The translations under genes were made by a program, and so were the position numbers. The notes under the pieces are model-generated. The model did no database searches and had not been told where the DNA came from. It was given only the letters and a program-made list of their open reading frames with translations. From Podarcis liolepis (Eukaryota), in NCBI GenBank assembly GCA_965112155.1, contig OZ218107.1: a stretch of 64,000 nucleotides of DNA. The stretch is one strand, 5' to 3'. Shown piece by piece: positions 8,598-54,200 of the stretch (its first letter is position 1; every line of letters starts with the position of its first letter).

Positions 8598-10740
8598 AAT
8601 TTATTTAAACATTGGCGTCCTGCCCTCCTGGTACAAAAGCAGCACTCTGGGCACCTTGTGACATTTAAAATTACAATTTCATGAAAGCAACAATATAAAA
8701 CAAGCAAACAAGGACAGAGGAACCAGTACAGTATAAACCAATCACAATGAGAATATCAGCTGCCAATTACACAAAAAAGCCTATTTTAATAAAACAGTCT
8801 TTAATAGCTAAACAACAAAAAATAAAACCCCCACACCAAACATTTCAGGGCAAGGTATTCCATGACAGGGCTCAGCCACTGAGAAGTCCCTCTCTTGCCA
8901 TCCTAGGTGGAACAAAGAGAGAGGAGCCTCTACTTCTGATGTTAGGAAACAGGCAGGTTGATAGGGAAGCAGAAGAATATGGAATATTGTAAGCCTTAAA
9001 CCTATACTTTAGGTCCAAAGGTATCCTGGATCTAAGTCACTTAAAGGCCTTAATCACAAATACTTTGAATTACAACCAGAAACATATTTGCAACCAGTTC
9101 TTCTCCCTAAGTTGGCAGGAATGCCAACTTGAATAAAACATTGGGGGGCAGGTAAGCCCCATAATCAATCACATGACACGCCACACGCACACCATTTCAA
9201 TGACATGCCCATCAACTTGGGGGGGCAGTCCCCTCAAATATTTTATGGGGGAGGCTGAAGGGACCTTGGCCCCTAGTTGGCTCCTAGGAATGACAGGTTT
9301 GCACATGCAAGCAGAATTCAATATGAGGTTTTATAGATGTAAGCTATTGGCAAGGTTGTATTATTTTCCTTCATTGTACAATTCCCAGTATTAGGTATCA
9401 ACATTATCATCATCAGGTGATACACTCAGATTTGTGATCTCTCTCACACACATATATATAGTCATGCTGTAATCTTGGGATAATCTGTACCCCATACTTT
9501 TGCTAAATGTATGAATTAGTACTAAGGCTTTTACAGACACTGGGTTGTATCCATTGTTACAGTACATACTCAGAGTAGACACATTGAAATGAATGAGCAT
9601 GGCGAACAGGGCCAGTAATTTCAATAGGTTTACTCTGAGTAGAATTTAGTTGGGTTAGAACCCATCACTTTAATATTTCTAAACATTTCCACAGCTCTTT
9701 GCACTAGAAATGAGCTAGGTTTTTTTTTTCTTAAAAGAAAGCAGACAGTTTCAGCAAATCAAAATCCTACATAAATGTCCAGATTTATATAAGAAATTCT
9801 ACCTACATTGGCAACAACCACTGTTACATGCATATTTTAGTTGTGGTTCCTTGTGATGGAACACTCCAATATTAAAATATTTGGTCTCTCATTTATCTTA
9901 GACCTATGACAGAATAGATCTAGTAATCCATCACATATTATCTCTTTTTTTAAAAAAATCCTTCACTAACATTTCAGATGCATCAACTTGGGCTCTAAAG
10001 AATTATATAACTAATATCTGACTATCTTAACACAGTGATGACAAAAATTATTGACTGGGCCTTTCTTTGAAAAAGAACAGATTACAAAATCAGATCATAT
10101 CGTAAACTGAAAATGTGTGACTGTGATCCAGAAATGCGCCCTGCTTCCCTGGAGCCCTGAATGATGCAACAAACTCAGGAAAGATACTACTATGCATTTT
10201 CATTAGGTACACAGTAGAAGTGACTAGTTCAGGTAAGCAAAATAGGTAACTACCCTCATCCTAAAGCAGGTAGAAGCAGCACCCCATAAGGATATGTTTT
10301 GGGCTAGCAGCTGATCCCTCTAGTCTTCTTCAGATATTTCTGCCATCCCCTTCACTCCTTCATGAGAGGGAATTCTGGCCTTTGCCCCACCTCTCTGAAC
10401 CATCCCACTGGCCTCAGCACCCCTGATAAGATTTCTCATGACTTTGGGCCATTTCTGCCCACTCCTAACATGGCCATGTCTCAGCCATTCTTGAAGACAA
10501 TATAGAGTGACACCCTTGTCAACCAATCCCTAGCCCCATACCAAAGCCAAACTGCTCACTTCTCATTTTCTGCCAGCATCCATGGCTGATAACATTTCTG
10601 AGTATCACCAGACATGACTGAGACAAACTGATGATTCAATTGTGTGGGGCCAAGGTATAGAAAGGGGGCACTCCAAGCTCCAAGCTCCCAGGCACAGTGA
10701 GCTGCTTTATTATATATTTATATTATTAATATTTTCTAAT

Positions 10741-11197
10741 CGTATAGTTAAAGCTATGATTTTCCCAGTAGCGATGTATGGAAGTGAGAGCTGGACCATA
10801 AAGAAGACTGATCGCCGAAGAATGAGTGCTTTTGAATTCTGGTGCTGGAGGAGACTCTTGAGAGTCCCATGGACTGCAAGAAGATCAAACCTATCCATTC
10901 TTAAGGAAATCAGCCCTGAGGGCTCACTGGAAGGACAGATTGTGAAGCTGAGGCTCCAATACTTTGGCCACCTCATGAGAAGAGAAGACTCCCTGGAAAA
11001 GACCCTGATGTTGGGAAAGATGGAGGGCACAAGGAGAAGGGGACGACAGAGGACGAGATGGTTGGACAATGTTTTCGAAGCTACCAGCATGAGTTTGACC
11101 AAACTGCGGGAGGCAGTGGAAGACAGGAGTGCCTGGCGTGCTCTGGTCCATGGGGTCACGAAGAGTCAGACACCAGTAAACGACTAAACAACAACAA
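10741..11197 (+). mobile_element. BovB (RTE clade) LINE 3' fragment
   Basis: Open frame VKAMIFPVAMYGSESWTIKK...AFEFWCWRRLLRVPWTARRSNLSILKEISP...HGVTKSQT, then a (CAA)n tail. Confidence 0.95.
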
Positions 11198-14874: not shown

Positions 14875-15750
14875 GCCTAGATGTTGGTTAATAACAAAAC
14901 AAAACAAAATTGATTATTGCTTTTCCCAGAGCAACCAAAACATAGATCTTTACATTGTGTGTTTTCTTTATGACTGAAATATAACAAAATCCTAAATACA
15001 TTCCTCTATATTCCTCTCATGCATGAGTCAACAGCTGCAGACCTCTGAAGCAAACCTGGACCCCTAAGGATGCTGCTACCTGCCCCTTCACAAGTTACCG
15101 ATCTAAAGGTGAAAGATAAGCTGGTCTCTGTGGCAACAGAACTTGGTGGCATAGCATACTAGATGGTCTTCCCACCTCTTCTCCCACCTCAAAGTGTCCC
15201 CTGGACAGACGAATTCTTTACCAGAGCTCTCTTATGACCAATATAATTGTTTTTAAAGGATTATGGGCCTTTAAAAACACTTCAAACATTTCCCAACTAT
15301 TGTCAAAACCCATTTAAACTCTCAGGAGTATACAACCACTATGCAGGTTTATTGCTAAATTTCTACAGTGAAATTAAATAGGAAGTGATCAAAGTCTAAC
15401 TATGCTCGACATTTTAGGCATCAGGAATGAGTAGTTTCACCTGTAATGAACTGCTTCACCTATATTTAGTAGTTATGACTTTCATACTATTTTGGTAATA
15501 CACTTAGGATGTAAGACTATGGTAATTACATTTCCCTCAAGTTAACCTCTCTGGAAAAATATATATAATTATATACATTTTATTTAAAGTAGTATGGAAG
15601 CACAAAATTAACCACAGGGACAGATTTTGAAATGTTATTAACAGCATCTCCTTCTTTGAAGAGATAGGAACATCTTTTGGGGAAACTATCATTGAAAGAG
15701 GTTTTACAATACTTTTTTAAAAAGGAAGGAAGTGTAAGGTGCAACCTCAC

Positions 15751-16571
15751 CTGCTTGGTATTGTCTTTAAGCAGCCTTTGATAGATTTGTCTGTAACACC
15801 TTCCTGGACTTTATCTGTAACTTCTCCCTGGGCTTTATTCTCTTCCGCTGGTGGCGCAGTTTCCTTTTTGTGGCAGATCAAAATATAATTGCGATTGTCA
15901 TTGTTTGCCCAAAATATTCCCACCGATGTCTCATAACGGATGCAAAATTCAACCTTAGCGTCCTCTCTCTGATAAGGAGGAACCAATGAAATCTTGAACA
16001 AGAACTGGTCAGTCTCGCCATCACAAGAATTAGGCACATAATCTCCTAAGATGTCATAATAAGTCTGCCAGTTGTCCAAAGACATTCGGACATAGACCAG
16101 CTTTTCGAAGGATACATTCAGAACACGGATGGTGCCCTTCATACATGTTATCCCTGGCAGGAACTCGACAGACTCTAGCCATACTTTCTGTGCACGCACT
16201 TTTTGCAAAAGCTCTTCTTGTGTGGCAGGCAGTATAAACAGTGGAGATAAATAAAATTCCTCCACAGGCACAACTTCATCTTCTAAGTCGTCATTTGGTA
16301 ATGTAATTGGAACATCCCAGGTATCAAACTCCTTAACGGATACAAGGTCAAAACCAAATGCATCAGCAAATGAAACTTTTCTTGCAATGGTGGATGGGGT
16401 TTCTGCTTCCATTTCTTCAGAAGAATCTGAATTCCGCCTCCGGGGGCTGGGGGAGAAGCGGTGCTGCAGTGTAGCTTTAACATCTTCATCTTCTGAGAGA
16501 GAATCGCTTAAAGTGGGAACTTCTAATAAGTTCTCCCTACTAATCTGACCAGGTTCTTCAAAAGACTCCAT
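15751..16571 (-). CDS. PPP1R3A: Protein phosphatase 1 regulatory subunit 3A (GM/RGL, muscle glycogen-targeting subunit), coding exon 1
   Basis: Translation from ATG 16571 (MESFEEPGQISRENLLEVPTLSDSLSEDED) matches the GM N-terminus. It has the PP1-binding RVxF motif (RKVSFADAFG), a PKA-type site (RRRNS) and a CBM21 domain (GTIRVLNVSFEKLVYVR...FWANNDNRNY). The frame ends at a canonical donor CAG|GTGAGG (minus strand, exon end 15751; 821 nt, phase 2). Downstream exons were not recognised in the window. Confidence 0.95.
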
Positions 16572-16599
16572 TGGGTTCTCTGATATAAACCGAAAGAGA

Positions 16600-16720
16600 C
16601 CCGTCTGAGTAGTGGCAGCTGATATTTGAGACCTGCGATTTGAAACAAGGATTAATATTACAGTTGACATTGCAGAAGGGACTCTGCTCTATTAATAGAA
16701 GCAATGGCTTTTTAACTATG
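16600..16720 (-). promoter_or_regulatory. PPP1R3A proximal promoter with MEF2 site and E-boxes
   Basis: Perfect MEF2 consensus CTATTAATAG at 16689-16698, and E-boxes CAGCTG (16616-16621) and CAGTTG (16661-16666), within ~130 bp upstream of the ATG of a muscle-specific gene. Confidence 0.6.
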
Positions 16721-21704: not shown

Positions 21705-22035
21705 GGACTACAGGTGGTGCTCTGGGTTAAACCACAGAAGGTCGGCAGTTCGAATCCCTGTGATGGGGTGAGCTCCCGTTGCTCAGTCCCTGCTCCTGTC
21801 AACCTAGCAGTTCAAAAGCACATCAGAGTGCAAGTAGATAAATAGGTACTGCTCAGGCGGGAAGGTAAACAAAGTTTCCATGTGCTGCTCTGGTTCGCCA
21901 GAAGCGGCTTAGTCATGCTGGCCACATGACCCGAAAGCTGTATGCCGGCTCCCTCGGCCAATAAAGCGAAATGAGCGCCGCAACCCCAGAATCGGCCACA
22001 ACTGGACCTAATGGCCAGGGGTCCCTTTACCTTTA
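21705..22035 (+). mobile_element. Sauria SINE
   Basis: tRNA-like head (ggttaaaccacagaaggtcggcagttcgaatcc), diagnostic body gtgcaagtagataaataggtac...gtcatgctggccacatgacc, and an (ACCTTT) tail. Confidence 0.9.
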
Positions 22036-22322
22036 TAGGTAGGCGGACCTTGTGCAGCTAACAGGATGCTTCATTGTTCATTCTTCTAAACTTTCTCATC
22101 ATAGGCTTTGCTCCAGGAGGGCCTAGAATGATCAGGGGTGCTGGTATCTCGAACTGGATCAGGCAGGCAGATGGTGTGGGGCCTTCTTGTGCTACTGATG
22201 GGGTGTCATTGAGATGGCAGGCTCCAACTGCTCTTCAGAGACCCTGGAAGTGCTGTGGGTCCTGCTCTTCCTCAGGAGTCTTCTTGGACCAAACCTGGCC
22301 AGGCACTAACAAAAGTTTAGGC

Positions 22323-22458
22323 CAGGCATTCCCAACCTGCGGCCCTTCAGATGTTTTGGCCTACAGCTCCCATGATCTCTAGCTAACAGGACCAGTGGTC
22401 AGGGATGATGGGAATTGTAGTCCAAAACATCTGGAGGGCCAAACTTTGGGGATGCCTG
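22323..22458. mobile_element. Palindromic hAT-type MITE, family B
   Basis: TIRs CAGGCAT/ATGCCTG; perfect 8-bp TSD gtttaggc. Confidence 0.85.
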
Positions 22459-22662
22459 GTTTAGGCTGGGCTTCAGAGATGAAAGCTTCTGTTTTGATTT
22501 TGTGCAATAGACTGGAAATAATTACAGCCAAGTCCGCAACAAATTTCACTTCAATTTGTATTTTCTATCAGGCAAGCATGTGTTCTGTCAAATGCAAACA
22601 TGTTTGACTAGGTGTCACGCACAGGAGCCAAGCAGTGATATCAGTTTTTTCTGCATATCAGC

Positions 22663-22914
22663 GAAGGGTCAGCAAACTTTTTCAGCAGATGGCTGGTCCA
22701 CTGTCCCTCAGACCTTGTGGGGGGCCGGACTATATTTTTTTGGGGGGGGGATGAATGAATTCCTATGCCCCACAAATAACCCAGAGATGCATTTTAAATA
22801 AAAGCACACATTCCACTCATGTAAAAACACACTGATTGCTGGACCGTCTGTGGGCCGGATTTAGAAGGCGATTGGGCCGGATCTGGCCCCCGGGCCTTAG
22901 TTTGCCTACCCATG
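22663..22914 (+). mobile_element. hAT-type MITE, family A
   Basis: Closely similar to 5011-5259; lies ~390 bp upstream of the forkhead ORF. Confidence 0.85.
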
Positions 22915-23301
22915 ATCTAACCCTTTCACAATGCTATCAAACTGCGATCTTTTTTTCCTTCAGTCCTTGGCTTTCAGTGGGGAACACTGAAGGGTGTTTT
23001 CCCAGATTATGCAGAAGGAAATGGCAGTCTGCTTATCTTCATGCCTTTCTTGCTAGAATTGTTTCATTTTCCCTCCCCTATTCAGTTAGTATCTGCACCT
23101 TGATTTCTTGTAAATATGAGTAGCTAACCCAGTATAAAAGAGAGAACAGAATATGAGCTGGAGCTGAACACCCATTTAGGTTGCATGTACCTCATTTACT
23201 TTGGCTGCAAGCGGCTGTATCAAATGAATACTTTTCCCAAAAATCTTCCCATAAAATACTGTAAAACCTAAGCAGTAACCCAGGAATTCAGGACTACTGC
23301 A

Positions 23302-23948
23302 ATGATTGGCAACTTTGAGAGCATCATAGACATTCCAAACACCTGTGAAAACTACCAAGAAAAGGTAGACGCATCCAATGGAATTTCTCCCAGACTAGCA
23401 ATTGGTGTGCTATATGCCAGAAGAAGTCTATCAAAACGCATAACCGAAGATGCTACGGAGAAGCCGCCACTATCTTACATCACTTTGATTGCTAATGCGA
23501 TTCTTTCCTCGTCTATAAGGAAGCTCACTTTAGCTGCTATTTACAAATATATTGAAGAAAATATTCCTTTTTACAGGAAGAGAGGCCAAAGCTGGAAAAA
23601 CAGTGTCAGGCATAATCTTTCACTAAATGATTGCTTTATCAAAGTGGGAAGGTGTGAAGACGGCAAAGGAAATTACTGGAGCATCCAGCAAATGTAAACG
23701 ATTTTGTGCATGGTGACTTTCGGCAACACCGCAGACTGCACCAACAAGGACGCCAAAGGGAATATGACCCACATCACAGCACATCTTACCGTGCACCGTG
23801 GGGAAACTGCTCTTGTTTGATACTCGTTTTGCCTTCTCAAATGAATCCCTACTTTTGGGATCCCTTCTGGGAAACGCTGATTGTGAAAATGCTTTCCAAG
23901 GGCTGGAGGTTAACTTTGGTTTTTCCCATGGAAAGTTTTAATCTGTGA
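23302..23948 (+). pseudogene. Intronless FoxQ2-type forkhead transcription factor gene, frameshifted near 23683-23688 (pseudogene, null allele or assembly error)
   Basis: ORF 23302-23697 encodes [18 protein letters not shown]...[32 protein letters not shown] shifted frame continues at once with [18 protein letters not shown], the wing-2 signature typical of FoxQ2, to a stop at 23948. There is TATAAAA at 23133-23139 and AATAAA at 24195-24200. Confidence 0.8.
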
Positions 23949-26900
23949 TACAATTCAGTGAAGCAAAATGGAACTCCGTGGATGTGTTTTATGGGTTACG
24001 TTCTTCAACTGTACAGCAGAACATTTCCCTGAATGTTCAACAGATGTTCCCTGCTTCCTTATGCATATGCCCTTTCAATCTACAGAGTAGAGATGCATTC
24101 AGCTATATCTTTCAGAACCTGAGAGGATGCTACTTGCACTTGGACTGGACCAATTCAGCTGGACATTTCATCCCTGATGACCAATTCATACTTTAATAAA
24201 TACAACATGATAAAAGTATTTGCTGTAAAAGACAGTGGTGTAATACTGGGACTTTGTTGGAAATGAGTCTCATTTATTTTAATGGAAATTGGTTTCGCAT
24301 TAAGAATGCTTAGGGTCAGACTTGACTGAGATTGTACTGCAAATCAGTGAACCGATGTCTTTTATTGTCACAGCTGTTGCTTGGGGGAGTCTCTCGCTTT
24401 TGGTTTTTACACTGTCAATATTATATTCCACAGTTGCAAATGATGCTTCAGAGAATACAGTCAACATTGCTGCATGGAAATCACAAACCATTTCATCTAA
24501 GTGATTGTTCAGGAATTGTTTAGAAAACCTCACAGCATTTTCTTTAACAATAATGATTGCAAATAGCTACTCTTCAGAAAGCTTTAAGCTGTTACTGCTG
24601 TACATTCTTCTTTATTCAATAAGATAACAAGAGTTGCTGACTTTTACAAAACTGCAGTTACTGCTGATATAATCTGAAACGATGATATGACTGTCAACAC
24701 ATTGTACAGTCCTATTTCAGTGTGAAGTTCATTGCATTGTTTACATTTATTAACAATGAACTTATCATTGTAATGGGGACAGTCTGATCTCATATCTTCT
24801 GCTTCAACAGGAATAAACCAGAAGCATTGGCTATTATACCATACAGTTAATGTATTCTTTAGGCATACTCATGTGGAACTATGGACTGGGAAGCCAATGA
24901 CATAAATGTTTATTCATAATGTGGGGTCTTTATGCCTTTTCTAGAAGTCATTCTTGCTAGTATTATTGGAATACTGCATCCAGTTATAGGTGCCACAATT
25001 TAGGAAGGATGTTGAGAAGCTGGAACGTGTGCAGAGAGAACTCAGCTAATAAATTTAGATTTAACTTGATGAAAGATTAGAAATGTTAGTGGGAGATTAG
25101 CGATGGAAGAGAACATGCTTATACAGATAACTACTGGTACCTGAGATGAAACCATTTAGAGACAATTGCCATAATTGAAAATACAAATTATACTAGTAAA
25201 GCACAATGTCTGAGAGACCTCTTTTCAGATATCACATTGCCATCTATTTCCCTCCTGAAAACTTAGAACAGCATTCAAAATGTGTACACAAACTTTCATT
25301 CCAACATCTCAGCGTTGAATGCAAATGTTGTATTGCATTGTCTTTTGCATTTTCCCTCACATTAAAATGAGGTGGGGGTTTCGTGGATACCTGAAACTTC
25401 AGGTATGGAATTCTGTCTTGAACATATGTGCAAAGTTTAGTTCCAATGTCTTGGTGTTTACTTGAGTTATCACATGACAAACAAACAGTATGCCAAATGG
25501 ACCCATTGAACCAAAGACCTTATTCTTCATGGTCAATAAAAAGTTTTTGTTTTAAAAAGGCACAAATATGTTTTAATTCAAGTATGTGTCTCGAATAAAC
25601 AAGGCAGGAGGCTATCCTTTTCTCTGCGCAGCTACTTTTGGAGTGTACATATTAAATGCCAAGTGACTGACATAAATAGCTTAGGCTGAAGTCATGTGGA
25701 CTCCTATAAATAAGCCCCACTGGCTCAGTTTTTCTTATACCGGCAGACAGTCCCCAACACACTGCTTGAAGTAAAGGCTGATTTGTATATTCAGGGGAAA
25801 GCACATTATTCCCAGCTTCTTGTGACTGTGGGAGAATCATTTGACTGAATGTTCAGCTGCGTCAGTTCAAAAAACCCACCTGTGACAAAATGGGCCTCTT
25901 AGGATGAATGGTTTCTGCTGTAGCCCTACCAGAGTATTCTGTGTTCAGGGCATTTGCCACAGAGGAGATTATTTGAATATGCAACCGGTCACTGCATTTC
26001 TAAGTCATACCATTCCAAGAGGGCTTTATAAAATGATCTTCCTGAATGTGTTGATCAGATCTCAACCCCATTGGTTTTATATTTCATATTTCAGGACTGA
26101 AAACAAGCGAAAGCAGAAGTAAAATAACTTGGTTGAAATGTTATTTTATCCTGCATTTAGCAAATAATTAATTCTGTGACAGTCCTGGCCTAATCTTAAA
26201 TTGAAGGTTTATCTCCCCCCCCCCCCCCGCAAAAAAATGCTATTTGTTTTATTTAGTGCGTGCTGATTATTGTGCATTTTCTATCTATATGAACTAGCTG
26301 TTCTTGCCTTAGGCTGTGTGCCAATGGTACCACCAGGCACCACAAACCAGCCCCTTCTACAAAAGAACAGTGTTGCACCTCTAGCAGTCACTACAATGTC
26401 TTCCCTACCCATTTATTTACTTTTCACAGGCTGCTACTGCTGTGGAGCAAAGACGCTTCAAGCAGTTGGGCCTACCAGGTTCATTTCCAGGAGTGCTGTG
26501 CCTCTGGGCTCATGTGAAAAGAAAAACAATCAGTTGATGGATGGAGAGCAGAAAACAGCACAAATCAACCGAGTTGGAATTTGTCTGCTTCTGTGCATCC
26601 TGTGATGGGGGGTGGGGGTGGACCTGCCCATTTCAGTTGTACCTGTTTCTAACTTTCCCCATCAAATTCAGTTTTCTGCATTTCTGCATCCATTTGTGAT
26701 TTCTTTTAAATAATAATTAAAAATCCTCATGCAAATTCATCAGCATTTTAGTGCAAATTTCTCCTAGTGAACACAAAACTTTGTATGCAGCTTGAAGTAA
26801 TGCACACATTTTTGCAAGCAATTTATCCTAACTTAATGATTTTTGTGTGTTCTTTCCACCAATATATGCATTTTTATGTGCACTTTAATATACACGCTTT

Positions 26901-27344: not shown

Positions 27345-27747
27345 TCATAGAATCATAGAATTGTAGAAATGGAAGAGTCCAACCCCCCTGCTATGCAGGG
27401 ATCTCAGCTAAAGCATCCATGACAGATGACCATCCAACTTCTGCTTAAAAACCTCCAAGGAAGGAGAGTCTACAACCTCAAGAGGGAGACTGTTCCACTG
27501 TCCAACAGCTCTTAGTGTTAGAAAGTTATTCCTGATGTTCGGAATCTCTTGTAATTTGAAGCCATTGGTTTGAGTCCTACCCTCCAGAGCAGGAGAAAAC
27601 AAGCTTGTTCCCTCTTCCATGAGACAGCCCTTGAGATATTTGAAGATGGCTATCATATCTCCTCTCAATCTCCTCTTTTCCAGGTTAAACATTCCCAGCT
27701 CCTTCAACCTTTCCTTATAAGGCTTGGTTTCCAGACCCCTGGTCATC
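27345..27747 (-). mobile_element. CR1 LINE 3' fragment
   Basis: ORF KMTRGLETKPYKERLKELGMFNLEKRRLRGDMIAIFKYLKG...EVFKQKLDGHLS, with an (ATTCTATG) tail at 27345. Confidence 0.92.
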
Positions 27748-29283
27748 TTTTTGGGAAGAATAAAAAGGGATCTGTTCATTTTGTTCCTGCCACCTTCATG
27801 CGTGAATGTATTCCAAGACAACGGCGCCAAGATAATGTCCTGCACAAGCATTTTCCTCCTTCAGTTCAATTGAGGCCACAGCCCTGAATGTCCATTCCTT
27901 TGTCTACCGTGTTCCGCCATTTGCAAAGAAGCACATGGAGAAGTTATGGTTCATCACCAGTTATCGAGGTGAAATGTATTCAGTTACCTTGTGCAAACAG
28001 GTTATTGGCTTTGTGTTCATTGACAGACCTTGAAGGACAAGGTGCACTCAAAAACCTATCACTGTGCAGTTAATAATTCTGTCTCTTCTGCAATATCTAC
28101 ACATCAGAAGTGCAGCAGTTTCAAAGTGGAAGTCAGTGCTCCTGACATTAATGGTTGAGGTGTTTTATTCCTTCACCTCTTGATCACGGAAGTGTGATAT
28201 AATTATCCTATATGTGCCTAGTAGTTTAGCATCTTTTGATGCCGAGATGGAGAGTCCATGAATCCCTATAACTTTAAATACAAAGAAATTATAAGAGTGA
28301 ACAATAACACCGAATCTTTAGAAAGAGCCCAAATATAATATAGGGAATGATACACAAGCAAAGATAAATGAGGATGCAGGCACCTCTCCATGTTTTGCAG
28401 GCTGCAGGAAGCACTGTAGACGACCATCAGAAACCCAGGCACTGATTCAGAGAGCAATTCTGAAATGCAACACAATAAATTCAATGGCATGCATCACAAA
28501 TCACAATCAATCAAGACCAAAGTGTTGTTATGCTTGAAAAGCTTTTCTAGGAGACTTGTTCAGCTGTGGTTCTTCAGCTGAAGATCTTTCTTTCTTTCTT
28601 TTTAATTGAGAGGCAACTGCTGCACATTCCCTCCGAAGTGTAGTAAAGAAATGGCAGATGTTCTACCGGCTGATAATTACTCCATAAATTAGAATCAAAT
28701 AATAGCTTTTTAACAATTAGAATAATCATAGTAATTTTAAGGGTGGCTGGAACAAGAATGCTGGCGCCAAGTTTGTGAAATTATACAAAACTGAAATTAA
28801 TATGTGAATAATCTCCGCCATTAATCAAGAAATAAATCCATCTTACTACTGGATTTGCGTTGAGCAGCTAATAACTGCCATCACACTTCCCTAAGCCTAC
28901 AAGCCAAATATAGATAGAAGGGTGATGGATTTTACTTGTCTGAAAGTGACAATTCTCTCCAAAATATCACTAGAACATGCGGTCGGCAGGCTTTTGCTGT
29001 TAGTGGACAGAGCAATCCTTTGGAGGTGGGAGAGTTGGAAGTGAAGGAACTGCCAAGTCCTGCTGGACCCACACCAACAGGATGGAAAGTGTGTGGTGTG
29101 TATGTGTGTGTGATTTTTGTCCATTCTTTTCAGCCTTTTTCTTTTCTTTTCTTTTCTTTTCATCATCATCATATTTATACCCTGCCCATCTGGCTGGGTT
29201 ACCCCAGCTACTCTGGGCAGCTCCCAATAGAAGATCTATTGATGCCAATGGGAGAGAAAATAAACATTCCAGTCTCAGGGGAA

Positions 29284-31681: not shown

Positions 31682-32119
31682 TTAGAGATTTCTGGTTGCT
31701 AACACCATCATAAAATGTTTTGGTAAAACTAGTTCCTCTTCTAACTGTGCAATTTATCACATGATAGTAGCGTACGCAGACGGTTTTTGAAAAGCCAAAG
31801 AATGCACCATGTCCCTGTGATGTGATGTCTGCAACTCCCACTGATTTTATTGATATTGTGGTTTAGCAAGAACCCCGGGGTATCCGTTTGGACTTTGGAG
31901 CTGCTCCTGCAGGCTCCAGGCTTTTCTAAAGTGGAGGGGTTGAACAGAGCTGGTGGTTTGGCTCTTGCAGCACAGCCCACCTGAAAGTGAACCCGGCTTA
32001 TTTCAGTTGAACTGCTTTCACAAAATAACTCCACTTCAATTATTTTTCTACACTCATGCATGTAGATAGCTAAAACACACACTAAAAGTGTTGGTTCACA
32101 TGCCATGTCTCCTTTTATA

Positions 32120-32277
32120 NNNNNNNNNNNNNNNNNNNNNNNNNNNNNNNNNNNNNNNNNNNNNNNNNNNNNNNNNNNNNNNNNNNNNNNNNNNNNNNNN
32201 NNNNNNNNNNNNNNNNNNNNNNNNNNNNNNNNNNNNNNNNNNNNNNNNNNNNNNNNNNNNNNNNNNNNNNNNNNNNN
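32120..32277. other. Assembly gap (158 N)
   Basis: Run of N bases. Confidence 1.
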
Positions 32278-32411
32278 CTTTGTCCCAATGAATCTCATAC
32301 CCACCCAAAGCCAGACCCTCCAAATGTTCCTATTTTCCAAGGACATCCCTGATTAACGGAAGCCAACCCGGTTTCTAATTTGATTCTGGAATGTCCCACT
32401 TTTCCTTAGGA

Positions 32412-36017: not shown

Positions 36018-36022
<5 letters not shown>

Positions 36023-38046
36023 GGTTTTGGTGTCCTCGGGTGTCTTCCCGTGTAAAAGTTGGGGTGTCTAGGCGACGTTTCGACGAGGTCTCACTCGTCA
36101 TCTTCAGGCTGGTGCTTTCGGCTTCTTGTTACTGGAACAGAGCGGGATCTCAGTGTTTGAGTTCCTATAAATACTGTAGAGGGGTGTGGTGTATTGCCTC
36201 AAAAGTTCTGGGCAGAGGGGAAGTTCCCAGGCTAGTGTTCTTTTCTTCTTTTGTTCCTTAATTACTTGAGGGATATCTTGAGTGATTTCTTGAGTGATAT
36301 TCTGAGTACCACTTAGGTGGGTCATTAGGTGTGGATTAGTTGCTAAAGCCTTCGTGTCTTGACCTCTTGAATTTGTGAAGAGTTTTTCTGGGAAGATGGC
36401 TGTACTGCACTTAGTTGTGCTTTGGCTTGGCTTCGTGTATAGGGGCGAGCTGTGGTTTTGTGCCCTGTGCCAGCCAGATCTGTGTAGGGATTGCAGGGGG
36501 GTGCAGCATCCGGAGGTGCCACTATGGTTTGGTTACTGGATGGTGTCTGTAATTTATCTGTGGAGAGGGTCTGGGTTTGGGTCTGGTGTGGTTGATTGGT
36601 GGTGGCGTTCTGTGTGCCTCTGGATCTGGTGTCGGTTTTTGTGGGGAGGGCTAATTTCCAGATGTCTGGCAGGCGGGACGTGTCGTCACGCTTGTTCATG
36701 TTGTGAGGGTGTTTCTCTATCTCGATGGCTTCCATGATTATTCTCTTGTGGTGATGTTCCATGTTAAAGAGCAATTTGGAATCTGCAAAATTAATTTCGT
36801 GTCCTGTTTCTTTCATGTGTTGGAAAAGAGAAGAAGATTTTTCTTCTTTTTTGACGGCATTCTTGTGTTCTGCGATACGTGCATTTATTCGTCTGTTTGT
36901 TTGTCCAATGTACGTGGCTGGGCAGACTTTGCAGGGTATTTCATAGACCCCTTGGTTTTCCAACTGGATTTTATCTTTGGGGTTTCTGAGGATATTGGCT
37001 ATTTTTTGGTTGGTGCAAAAGGCTGTTTTGATATTGTGTTTATGGAGGATTTTGCTAATTTTATCTGTAGTGCCCTTGATATAAGGAAGGAGGGCCATGC
37101 CATTGTTTTCTTCCGTGTCTTGGTTTTTGGGGGGTGTTTCTTTTTGGATTAGCTTCTTAACCCTGTTTTGCTGGTATCCATTGGCGATTAACACATTTGA
37201 GAGATTCTGTAACTCAGTTGTCAAGTGGTCTTTGTCAGCCAGGCGTTTGGTTCTGGAGATGAGGGTCTTGGCTACGGAGTTTATTTGTGCAGGGTGGTGG
37301 TGTGATTGAGCATGTAAGTAGCGGTTGGTGTGTGTTTTTTTCCGGTAGATAGTGTGTCCTAGGGAGCCATCAGGATTTTTTGTAGATTAGGACGTCAAGG
37401 AAGGGAAGCTGGTTGTTGGCTTCTATTTCCATAGTGAATTGTATTTTGGGGTGTAGGCTGTTGAGATGTGTGAGGAAGCTATCTAGTTTTTCTTTCCCGT
37501 GTGGCCAAATTACAAAGGTGTCATCAACATATCTGAGCCAAAGTTTGGGTTTGTGTTCTGACTTGTCTAAAGCATTGGTTTCAAAGTGTTCCATGTACAG
37601 ATTTGCGATGACCGGTGAGAGGGGTGATCCCATAGGTGCTCCTTCTATCTGTTTGTATCTTTGTCCATTGTGGATGAAGTACGTGTTGGTTAGGCAGTGG
37701 TTGGTCAGGTCCAGGATGTATTCGGGGGGATTGTATTTGTTTTGAATGGCTGTCAAGGCTTCATTAATGGGCACTTGTGTGAAGAGAGATACAACATCGA
37801 AGCTCACAAGTAGGTCATCGGGATGTAGGTTTTGCTTCTTTATTGTTTCTATGAACTGGAAGGAGTTTGTAACGTGTGAAGAGATGGATTCTGCATAGGG
37901 CTGAAGTTGCTTAGCGAGAAATTTAGCGAGATTTTGTAGAGGTGAGCCTATGGAGCTGACTATTGGTCTGAGTGGTGTTCCTTCTTTGTGTATCTTGGGG
38001 AGGCCGTAGAGTTTGGGGCATCTGGATGATTTTTCTCTGGGGATGA
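36018..38046 (-). mobile_element. Penelope-like retroelement (RT + GIY-YIG), 5'-truncated, left arm; one 1-bp frameshift
   Basis: ORF 37370-38083 (LYGLPKIHK..PLRPIVS, SFDVVSLFT, GAPMGSPLSP, RYVDD) and ORF 36343-37224 (GVYEIPC..C..TYIGQT) are split by an extra base at 37375. The 3' end abuts (TA)n at 35991-36019. Confidence 0.95.
36067..36114 (-). ncRNA. Minimal type I hammerhead ribozyme (mirror copy in the left arm)
   Basis: Exact reverse complement of 39875-39922 (ggcgacgtttcgacgaggtctcactcgtcatcttcagg on the + strand). Confidence 0.8.
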
Positions 38047-38053
38047 AATCTCG

Positions 38054-39996
38054 CAAAATCTCGCTAAATTTCTCGCTAAGCAACTTCAGCCCTATGCAGA
38101 ATCCATCTCTTCACACGTTACAAACTCCTTCCAGTTCATAGAAACAATAAAGAAGCAAAACCTACATCCCGATGACCTACTTGTGAGCTTCGATGTTGTA
38201 TCTCTCTTCACACAAGTGCCCATTAATGAAGCCTTGACAGCCATTCAAAACAAATACAATCCCCCCGAATACATCCTGGACCTGACCAACCACTGCCTAA
38301 CCAACACGTACTTCATCCACAATGGACAAAGATACAAACAGATAGAAGGAGCACCTATGGGATCACCCCTCTCACCGGTCATCGCAAATCTGTACATGGA
38401 ACACTTTGAAACCAATGCTTTAGACAAGTCAGAACACAAACCCAAACTTTGGCTCAGATATGTTGATGACACCTTTGTAATTTGGCCACACGGGAAAGAA
38501 AAACTAGATAGCTTCCTCACACATCTCAACAGCCTACACCCCAAAATACAATTCACTATGGAAATAGAAGCCAACAACCAGCTTCCCTTCCTTGACGTCC
38601 TAATCTACAAAAAACCTGATGGCTCCCTAGGACACACTATCTACCGGAAAAAAACACACACCAACCGCTACTTACATGCTCAATCACACCACCACCCTGC
38701 ACAAATAAACTCCGTAGCCAAGACCCTCATCTCCAGAACCAAACGCCTGGCTGACAAAGACCACTTGACAACTGAGTTACAGAATCTCTCAAATGTGTTA
38801 ATCGCCAATGGATACCAGCAAAACAGGGTTAAGAAGCTAATCCAAAAAGAAACACCCCCCAAAAACCAAGACACGGAAGAAAACAATGGCATGGCCCTCC
38901 TTCCTTATATCAAGGGCACTACAGATAAAATTAGCAAAATCCTCCATAAACACAATATCAAAACAGCCTTTTGCACCAACCAAAAAATAGCCAATATCCT
39001 CAGAAACCCCAAAGATAAAATCCAGTTGGAAAACCAAGGGGTCTATGAAATACCCTGCAAAGTCTGCCCAGCCACGTACATTGGACAAACAAACAGACGA
39101 ATAAATGCACGTATCGCAGAACACAAGAATGCCGTCAAAAAAGAAGAAAAATCTTCTTCTCTTTTCCAACACATGAAAGAAACAGGACACGAAATTAATT
39201 TTGCAGATTCCAAATTGCTCTTTAACATGGAACATCACCACAAGAGAATAATCATGGAAGCCATCGAGATAGAGAAACACCCTCACAACATGAACAAGCG
39301 TGACGACACGTCCCGCCTGCCAGACATCTGGAAATTAGCCCTCCCCACAAAAACCGACACCAGATCCAGAGGCACACAGAACGCCACCACCAATCAACCA
39401 CACCAGACCCAAACCCAGACCCTCTCCACAGATAAATTACAGACACCATCCAGTAACCAAACCATAGTGGCACCTCCGGATGCTGCACCCCCCTGCAATC
39501 CCTACACAGATCTGGCTGGCACAGGGCACAAAACCACAGCTCGCCCCTATACACGAAGCCAAGCCAAAGCACAACTAAGTGCAGTACAGCCATCTTCCCA
39601 GAAAAACTCTTCACAAATTCAAGAGGTCAAGACACGAAGGCTTTAGCAACTAATCCACACCTAATGACCCACCTAAGTGGTACTCAGAATATCACTCAAG
39701 AAATCACTCAAGATATCCCTCAAGTAATTAAGGAACAAAAGAAGAAAAGAACACTAGCCTGGGAACTTCCCCTCTGCCCAGAACTTTTGAGGCAATACAC
39801 CACACCCCTCTACAGTATTTATAGGAACTCAAACACTGAGATCCCGCTCTGTTCCAGTAACAAGAAGCCGAAAGCACCAGCCTGAAGATGACGAGTGAGA
39901 CCTCGTCGAAACGTCGCCTAGACACCCCAACTTTTACACGGGAAGACACCCGAGGACACCAAAACCTGCATTCCTGTACCCGTGAAAATCTACGAA

Positions 39997-51800: not shown

Positions 51801-54200
51801 GAGTTCGAACCGGACAGGCGGCCTCACGCGCAAGGCTTTCATTTGCCACAGGCGCGCTCAGGCTCGGAAAGCGCGGGGTTCCAATTAAAACCAAAGTGCC
51901 ACCGAGCATGTGCAGTGTGCCTCCCTCACACCCTCATTCTCGGGGATACTTACTCGACAACAGACAGCGCTTTCTGACATGGAGTTACTAAATGTCCTTT
52001 ACGGGAAGCCCACCCCACCCCACTGAACGAATACTGTAACTTCTGAGGAGACACGCACAGGGGGACGTTGTAAGTTTGCGGTTCTGTGTGCGTTAGCCTA
52101 AGCGTAAGCCCTGCTGTGGGACCTACAAACGGGAGGGGGGAAAGGGGGGCATCGGAGCGTAGCTGTCAGCCAGGCGTCAGTTCCATTTACCCCCGTCTTT
52201 CTCATTCTTTCCCGCCTTTAGAGGAGGAGGAGAAGGAGGAGGACGCAGCAGGCAACCTGCTGGCGCGGGATTTACCACGCTTTTCTTTGCAAGGAGAGCT
52301 GGGCTGGGTGTTTAGTGTAGCACGTGTGGGGCCACCCGCTGCCTTTCGCCTTCCTCGCTGTGGGGTGTGCTTGAAGGTCAGAGTTGAGCTCCTGAGTTTT
52401 ATTGGCATACTAAACCTCCGGAGAGGGAGAGAGAGGCAGGGCGAGAGAGGAGGAGAGGGAGTCTGAAACGCGCGCGCTTTGACCAAACTCTGAAAAGCGC
52501 GGCCCAAGTCTGAGGAGATTTGCACACATACCCCTCCTCCTCCCCCTCCCCCCGTGCCAACGCTTCAAAGCAGCCTTTCTAAAGGGCTCTTGTAGTCCTT
52601 CCTGTCCTCCTTCTGAGAAGTCCCCCCCCCACTTCGCATAAGCCCCCCCCCCGCTCCTTTGGAGTACTAGCTGAAAAGCTGCTGTGGCGCAACCAATTTG
52701 ACACGACGCTTTTGTTTTCCCCTCTCCCGTTTGCAAGCCTGGTTGTGGCGCGAGGGTGGAGGTGGGGGGAGAGAGAAAGAGAGCGAGAGAGGAGAGCAAA
52801 CAACTTCTCGGGTGGTTTGTTTACATAGCAGGTGGACCTGACGTCAAGGAGGACGCTTCACTGCGAATCCGAATAATATCCTGCTCCGCTAGCAGGACTC
52901 CTTGCTCGGGAGAAGGCTGGCAAGCGGGGAGGCTGCAGCATCGGGGGCGAGGGAACCTTGCTAGATTGACCCCGCCACACTTTTATTTGGGGGGGGGGGA
53001 GTGCTGGTGGTGGCGGGAAGAAACTCGCATCCCCTCCCTGGTTTAGAGGAACACAACTTTAGGAACACAACCTAAAGAGTCGTTGTCACCCCAAAAAGGG
53101 GGGGGGGAACGTGCGTGCACACGCATTTTTCCCCTCCAAAAAAAAAAATCTGAATCTTTCCACAAACACACACACGAGAGGCAGCTGCACCCCCTCCATC
53201 CAGAGAGAGGGAGCCAGCCCCACACCCAGGGGGAGGGAGAACGCGAGAAGCAGCGCGAGCCTCTGAGAGAACGCGAGACCCCGCGCAGCTGCTGCTCCTG
53301 CCTCAGCTTTGGCGGCGGCGGCGGCTGCTGCTGTTCGGTCGGCGGCTCCTTTGCTTTGCTTGCTGCCGCCCAGGCCCCGGGAGCCACAGAGCCAGCGCCG
53401 CCTGCGGAGGAATATCCAGCCCTTTCAGAGACGCTGCTGCTTCTCTCTCTCTCTCTTGTTGTTGTTCCGTTCGGATTCCCCCTCCCACCCGGCGGCTCCT
53501 CTGGCGCGTCCTGGCAGCGGCGGCGGCGGCGGCGGCGGCGGCAGCAGCTCCTCCTGCAAAACACTTTTCCCTCTCCCTCGGTGTGTTTGTATTTGCGTGT
53601 GCGTGCGCGCGGCGAGCGAGTGCACCGCCTGCCTCTCTCTCCCTCTCTCTCTCCCCCGCCGTGCCATCTCCTCGGGACTCTGCTCAGTCAGTGTGCGCTC
53701 CTGGTAAGTTTTTTAAAATATATATATAAATACTATTCCCCTCCCTTCTCTCTCTCTCTCTCTTTCACCCCACCCCACCCCACCCCGTCCCTTCAGTCAG
53801 GGGTTTGACTAGTTACTTTCCTCCTGCCCTCGCTCTCGGCTCCCCTCCCCCTCCCGCTTTCTCTCCAGCTGCTCCTGGCTGCAAGAAAAGTTTGCCTGCA
53901 AGCCGCCGGGAACATGGCGTGTCCATGTGTCCAGGGTGACATGTGTCAAGGTCTGTTCTTAGCAGGTGGCGAGCGCTGTGGCCCACTCCTGCCCCTCTTT
54001 TCTTTCTTTCGCCGAAGCAAACGCCCACACGGAGACTTAATTTTGCATGCATCTTTGTTTTTGCAGGAGGGTTTCTTGGTTATAAATTAATCGAGGCAGG
54101 GTGTTAACCCCCCCCTCTCATTTTAACGCGCCCGATCTTCGGCTCGGGTAGCAAACACCCCCCCCCCCAAAAAAGAGCCTCGTGGCACCTCAAAGACTTA
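48900..54200 (+). promoter_or_regulatory. Large CpG island / promoter, probably the distal promoter of FOXP2
   Basis: Abrupt rise in CpG density against CpG-depleted flanks, with no recognisable transposons inside and GC, CGG and GA tracts. The gene identity is inferred only from the conserved divergent PPP1R3A-FOXP2 arrangement in vertebrates. Confidence 0.8.
53200..53703 (+). other. Putative non-coding first exon (likely FOXP2 upstream 5' UTR exon); start approximate
   Basis: Strong donor CTG|GTAAGT at 53703/53704, at the 3' end of the CpG island. It is preceded by GC-rich UTR-like sequence with (GGC)n runs and followed by AT-rich intron-like DNA. Confidence 0.55.

Follow-up and report, generated by a model that had tools for sequence, protein, structure and literature searches.

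A probable FoxQ2III unitary pseudogene beside PPP1R3A and the presumed FOXP2 promoter in the lizard Podarcis liolepis

What is the forkhead sequence that lies between PPP1R3A and the presumed FOXP2 promoter in the lizard Podarcis liolepis, and is it still a gene? The question is raised by a stretch of 64,000 nucleotides of contig OZ218107.1, hereafter the window, in which an earlier note had described a hidden, intronless FoxQ2-type gene. The evidence set out below points to a FoxQ2III unitary pseudogene that occupies, in this interval, the ancestral FoxP-adjacent site, a reading to which we give a probability of about 85%. The features of the forkhead locus are the following.

23133-23139, plus strand: TATAAAA, candidate TATA box, about 165 nt 5' of the start codon (direct reading).
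23302-23685, plus strand: coding piece 1, with the conserved ATG, the N-terminal region and the forkhead domain as far as ...GKGNYWSI (PF00250; tblastn).
23682-23686, plus strand: lesion 1, a 4-nt loss and frameshift between Ile and His-Pro of the forkhead domain (tblastn).
23682-23879, plus strand: coding piece 2, in a second frame, with wing 2 of the forkhead domain and a linker (tblastn).
23879-23882, plus strand: lesion 2, a 16-nt loss and frameshift at about 23880 (tblastn boundaries versus P0219 and P0252).
23882-24196, plus strand: coding piece 3, in a third frame, with the conserved C-terminal region to ...DQFIL and the stop codon (tblastn).
23939-23941, plus strand: lesion 3, an in-frame TAA (tblastn; direct reading).
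24195-24200, plus strand: AATAAA polyadenylation signal, overlapping the double TAA stop (direct reading).

The forkhead domain is encoded by an open reading frame at 23302-23697 (plus strand, 131 aa), whose residues 53-130 match positions 1-81 of the 88 in the Pfam profile PF00250 (E 1e-32; 112.5 bits versus a cut-off of 27). The end of the domain, 18 residues that form wing 2, is read from another frame, which begins at 23682 and shares 4 nt with the first. This confirms the earlier description of a forkhead domain spread over two joined frames, with TATAAAA upstream and AATAAA downstream. The three pieces were searched separately and not as a joined protein, and pieces 2 and 3, searched singly, gave no Pfam match. 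The start codon is the same ATG as in the Rhineura protein P0252. Since that protein begins at the ATG of the window, the entire conserved coding length, 23302-24196, lies within a single exon.

The state of the gene was assessed against its nearest protein, XP_033019408.1 of Lacerta agilis (P0219, 316 aa), a computational prediction with an open frame that is labelled "hepatocyte nuclear factor 3-gamma-like". This direct, single-exon orthologue is colinear with the window in tblastn, but across three frames: residues 2-139 fall on 23272-23685 (90% identity), residues 140-205 on 23682-23879 (89%) and residues 212-316 on 23882-24193 (87%). By protein identity, the window belongs to a lacertid-like lizard near Lacerta agilis but distinct from it. 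The ends of pieces 1 and 2 share 4 nt, read in different frames, which indicates that 4 nt were lost at this junction. At the second junction, six Lacerta residues (WADAQH) correspond to 2 nt in the window and eight Rhineura residues to 8 nt, which gives a loss of 16 nt. The in-frame TAA stands at a site where Lacerta, Rhineura, the squamate-like P0086 (Logan) and Cuculus (P0082) have Ser, and piece 3 has lost a further single codon in frame. The break that the earlier note had seen is thus real, but it is not the only one: there are two frameshifts and one premature stop, and no uninterrupted frame covers the conserved length.

The basic stretch that follows the forkhead domain reads RLHQQ(E/G)RQ in lacertids versus RRSRKRG in birds and turtles, with an Anolis-like RRSHKRE, and in helix 1 of Lacerta (IANEILSS) Glu replaces a conserved Ala. 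Going by these residues, constraint may already have been relaxed in lacertids before the frame broke.

Frame breaks of this kind could be assembly or sequencing errors in an intact working gene, as long-read assemblies carry indel errors and one frame join had sufficed for the earlier note. However, the lesions are three separate ones (4 nt, 16 nt and a stop), none of which is a homopolymer slip. Moreover, independent short-read contigs from public runs, with three organism labels and from three studies, were aligned to 22000-25500. Run X3 (organism B) provided a single contig of 1470 nt over 22894-24363, with 30 substitutions and no gaps. Run X1 (organism A) provided a gapless contig over 23688-24815 and had no coverage at 23661-23687, and run X5 (organism D) provided contigs over 23579-23731, 23701-23906 and 23877-25023, with no indel listed at the deletion sites. 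Lesion 1 is therefore matched without an indel by contigs of X3 and X5, and lesion 2 by contigs of X1, X3 and X5. This agreement at both deletions shows that they are not assembly errors and, being common to close relatives, that they predate the split of those relatives. The support from relatives concerns the two deletions and not the TAA; at 23939-23941 there is no substitution among those listed, with 120 further ones not displayed. We consider it very improbable that errors conceal an intact gene here.

A different proposal is that the first reading frame of 131 aa, with the helices and wing 1, is used on its own as a short DNA-binding or dominant-negative protein. The locus has kept much that such a product would need, namely the first 128 codons with the start codon, 81 of the 88 Pfam positions, the TATA-like box and the AATAAA signal. 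However, wing 2 and the basic stretch, which every intact orthologue conserves, have fallen out of frame. The 12 substitutions versus relatives listed in the former coding sequence, a small and partial sample, comprise 9 non-synonymous and 3 synonymous changes, and one relative carries Gly>Ser in the invariant GKG turn. A 9:3 count, small as the sample is, is what neutral drift would be predicted to produce. RNA-seq coverage, which the earlier note had suggested as a check on the gene, amounted to no reads over 22936-24924 in the one run used (X23, organism D, 12% of the run, one unspecified tissue). A truncated product is therefore unlikely, and it is the sole rival to the pseudogene reading that retains some room.

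The RNA reads of X23 were confined to the repeats that flank the forkhead gene. These highly repeated elements, at 22000-22935 and 24925-25041, reach a summed contig depth in the millions in all DNA runs, carry RNA reads on both strands and resemble SINEs or other interspersed repeats. The upstream element ends about 200 nt before the TATA-like box.

According to the unitary-pseudogene reading, the intact FoxQ2III would be a single-exon transcription factor that binds DNA through its winged-helix domain. Its frame would have been broken by the loss of 4 nt within the forkhead domain, the loss of 16 nt downstream and the change of a TCA-like codon to a TAA stop, which would leave the first frame without wing 2, without the basic stretch and without the conserved C-terminal region. 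The gene would have died before the split of the closely related organisms that share the deletions and would have drifted neutrally since, most likely yielding no functional protein. The window copy has thus presumably lost its function, and the hidden gene of the earlier note is most probably a pseudogene.

The class of the gene was examined with a maximum-likelihood tree (LG+C20) built from 77 aligned columns of 70 forkhead domains, in which the window was represented by piece 1 only. Three clades were recovered: FoxQ2II-like (96/95), FoxQ2I (95/88) and FoxQ2III (98/98). The FoxQ2III clade includes the window together with the published FoxQ2III of amphioxus, skate, lamprey and Ciona. Within it, vertebrates group at 97/94, sauropsids at 97/94, squamates at 99/92 and the window with Lacerta at 100/98; lamprey, Ciona and bichir have long branches and an uncertain exact placement. 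The references are those of Supplementary Data 1 of PMC12828049, matched to P0260 (Leucoraja, "FoxE3-like"), P0021, P0024 and P0317. The last is amphioxus XP_066283489.1, for which the offset between XM and XP accessions equals that of the FoxQ2I entry of that paper. With these four proteins the window shares an 11-residue FoxQ2III motif and GDFRQ(R/H)RR after wing 2. Tree and signatures together class the window gene as FoxQ2III and as neither FoxP class nor FoxQ2I, so that the assignment to FoxQ2 and not to FoxP made in the earlier note is borne out.

Given that the gene is intronless and that orthologues bear automatic names such as FoxI1-like, FoxD1-like, FoxG1 and HNF3-gamma-like, it might instead be a lineage-specific retrocopy or belong to another Fox class (FoxI, FoxL or FoxD). 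The tree rejects this explanation. In this forkhead-domain comparison, of the kind that the earlier note had called for and run with the domain of piece 1, the outgroup classes (FoxC2, FoxE3, FoxL1-like and FoxH1-like) were set apart at 95/86. The orthologues track the species tree from sharks to birds within FoxQ2III, no poly(A) tract follows the AATAAA (after 24200), and the locus is presumably the ancestral FoxP-adjacent one. A retrocopy or another class is thus barely conceivable. Sauropsid orthologues had already been predicted in databases but misnamed (FoxI1-like, FoxD1-like, HNF3-gamma-like).

The gene might also be FoxQ2I, the vertebrate foxq2 that determines blue cones, relocated to this site, with which it has FoxQ2-class motifs in common (AILSS and IHPAN..DF..GDF). 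FoxQ2I, however, forms its own clade. This clade includes AmphiFoxQ2a, proteins named "forkhead box Q2" from alligator, coelacanth and teleosts, and P0324, a separate protein from Podarcis muralis. Forcing the sauropsid group to join FoxQ2I costs 28.4 log-likelihood units (AU test, p 0.007). The FoxQ2I forkhead domain is divided between two exons (PMC8494292), versus one exon here, and both types of protein, one FoxQ2III-type and one FoxQ2I-type, occur in each of Struthio, Anolis carolinensis, Scleropages, Paramormyrops and Albula. FoxQ2I identity is rejected by the tree, the AU test and the exon structure, and its probability is negligible. This agrees with the earlier suggestion of a second FoxQ2 paralogue, apart from the blue-cone foxq2 at PIAS4.

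For amphibians, a FoxQ2 orthologue was reported as not found in Xenopus laevis and Pleurodeles waltl (PMC12828049). FoxQ2I-type proteins of Pleurodeles waltl (P0336) and Ascaphus truei (P0368) group within vertebrate FoxQ2I at 100/97, and further amphibian proteins of this type are P0359, P0369, P0396, P0411, P0421 and P0426.

The neighbourhood of the forkhead locus in the window is defined by two further features.

15747-16670, minus strand: first coding exon of PPP1R3A, with the RVSF motif and the CBM21 domain (Pfam CBM_21, E 1e-30).
52000-54000, no strand assigned: GC-rich island, GC 0.58-0.61, presumed FOXP2 promoter (by composition).

The minus-strand frame at 15747-16670 matches PDB 2m83 (PPP1R3A) at E 1e-65 versus 4e-20 for PPP1R3C. 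This exon and the forkhead gene lie on opposite strands, head to head and 6.6 kb apart. PPP1R3A is the neighbour of FOXP2 in amniotes. In human the two genes are head to head, and if this arrangement holds, the island at 52-54 kb is in the place of the FOXP2 promoter. The amniote neighbourhood thus suggests that the island is this promoter; the FOXP2 coding sequence is absent from the window. The linkage to FOXP2 proposed in the earlier note therefore stands as regards the adjacent PPP1R3A and the strand, which is the one expected for FOXP2, while FOXP2 itself is only presumed here. The note's idea of an ancient Fox-Fox linkage finds a match in published work, which reports FoxQ2III and FoxP as close neighbours in amphioxus, lamprey and skate (PMC12828049).

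Several repeats were also seen in the window. LINE-type fragments (C-terminal parts of reverse transcriptase) at 10642-11187 and 27408-27851 flank PPP1R3A exon 1 and the pseudogene on either side. At 36018-39971, two head-to-head reading frames, 36343-38083 (minus strand) and 38183-39646 (plus strand), are reverse-transcriptase/GIY-YIG-like and form a near-perfect palindrome. A run of N at about 31900-32200, within the frame 31741-32346 (X), marks an assembly gap or a masked stretch.

The distribution of FoxQ2III-type proteins was drawn from the best 120 matches listed. Among these, intact proteins of 267-301 aa, with 77-90% identity to that of Cuculus, occur in about 40 birds. Others come from three turtles, Crocodylus, Anolis, Rhineura, Lacerta, sharks and a chimaera, and from the ray-finned fishes Erpetoichthys, Acipenser, Amia, Albula, Anguilla, Scleropages, Paramormyrops, Pygocentrus, Seriola, Sparus and Anabas. 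The intact form measures about 270-320 aa across Lacerta agilis, Rhineura, Anolis, turtles, crocodiles, birds, sharks and many ray-finned fishes. The best 120 matches listed contained no protein of this type from a mammal, an amphibian or a coelacanth.

In birds, the FoxQ2III-type proteins are encoded on contigs that measure 70-76 Mb in passerines and 206-225 Mb in Colius, Cuculus, Struthio and Dromaius, and the FoxQ2I-type proteins mostly on contigs of 5-8 Mb. The former sizes presumably fit the chromosomes that carry FOXP2, and they offer a hint as to the position of FoxQ2III.

According to published work, FoxQ2 comprises three paralogues of ancient origin (Gattoni et al., Commun Biol 2025, PMC12828049). 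In the literature searched, this is the one paper in which the name FoxQ2III occurs. It reports FoxQ2III among vertebrates only from cyclostomes and cartilaginous fishes, and states that bony fishes and bony vertebrates have lost it (PMC12828049). The intact proteins predicted in sauropsids and ray-finned fishes contradict this statement of loss. It is likely that FoxQ2III has been kept as an intact, single-exon gene beside FoxQ2I in sauropsids and many ray-finned fishes, that in at least this lizard it keeps the FoxP2-adjacent site that dates back to the chordate ancestor, and that it was lost independently in mammals, probably in amphibians and, recently, in this lacertid lineage.

The FoxQ2III paralogue and its linkage to FoxP were already published in 2025 (PMC12828049), and the pseudogene itself is an ordinary one. 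What appears to be new, relative to the literature searched, is the survival of FoxQ2III in sauropsids and ray-finned fishes, and the position of the lizard copy beside PPP1R3A and the presumed FOXP2. Among 2026 papers, none on vertebrate FoxQ2III was found in the literature searched. If these readings are true, the published scenario would be corrected, and the set of Fox genes reconstructed for the ancestor of bony vertebrates would change. Chicken, zebra finch, Anolis and several fishes would become models for a gene whose study has so far been confined to amphioxus, lamprey and skate. In those three animals FoxQ2III is expressed in midgut endoderm (PMC12828049), and a midgut role may, by analogy, extend to the sauropsid orthologues. 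The recent death of the gene here, set against the open frame of Lacerta agilis, would then provide a natural loss-of-function contrast, a natural knock-out of a gut transcription factor. In the annotation of Podarcis liolepis, the locus would be entered as a pseudogene and not as a gene.

Among known systems, the closest to the window copy is Lacerta P0219, from which it differs by its missing 4 nt and 16 nt and by its TAA. The published FoxQ2III of skate (LOC129704521, P0260), lamprey (PMZ_0043577, P0021), amphioxus (FoxQ2b, P0317) and Ciona (P0024) fall in the same clade and have the same signature as the window. In amphioxus, lamprey and skate a FoxP gene lies beside FoxQ2III, where the window copy has PPP1R3A and the presumed FOXP2; among vertebrates the published members come from cyclostomes and cartilaginous fishes, whereas the window copy is a pseudogene from a lizard. 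FoxQ2I, the determinant of blue (SWS2) cones at PIAS4-ZBTB7A (Ogawa et al. 2021, PMC8494292), is of the same Fox class, FoxQ2, and was likewise lost in therian mammals. Its signature is GRSDNGKGHFWAIHP with GDYHRRRARRR, in contrast with the FoxQ2III motif and GDFRQ(R/H)RR of the window, and its two-exon forkhead domain at PIAS4-ZBTB7A contrasts with the one-exon domain near PPP1R3A.
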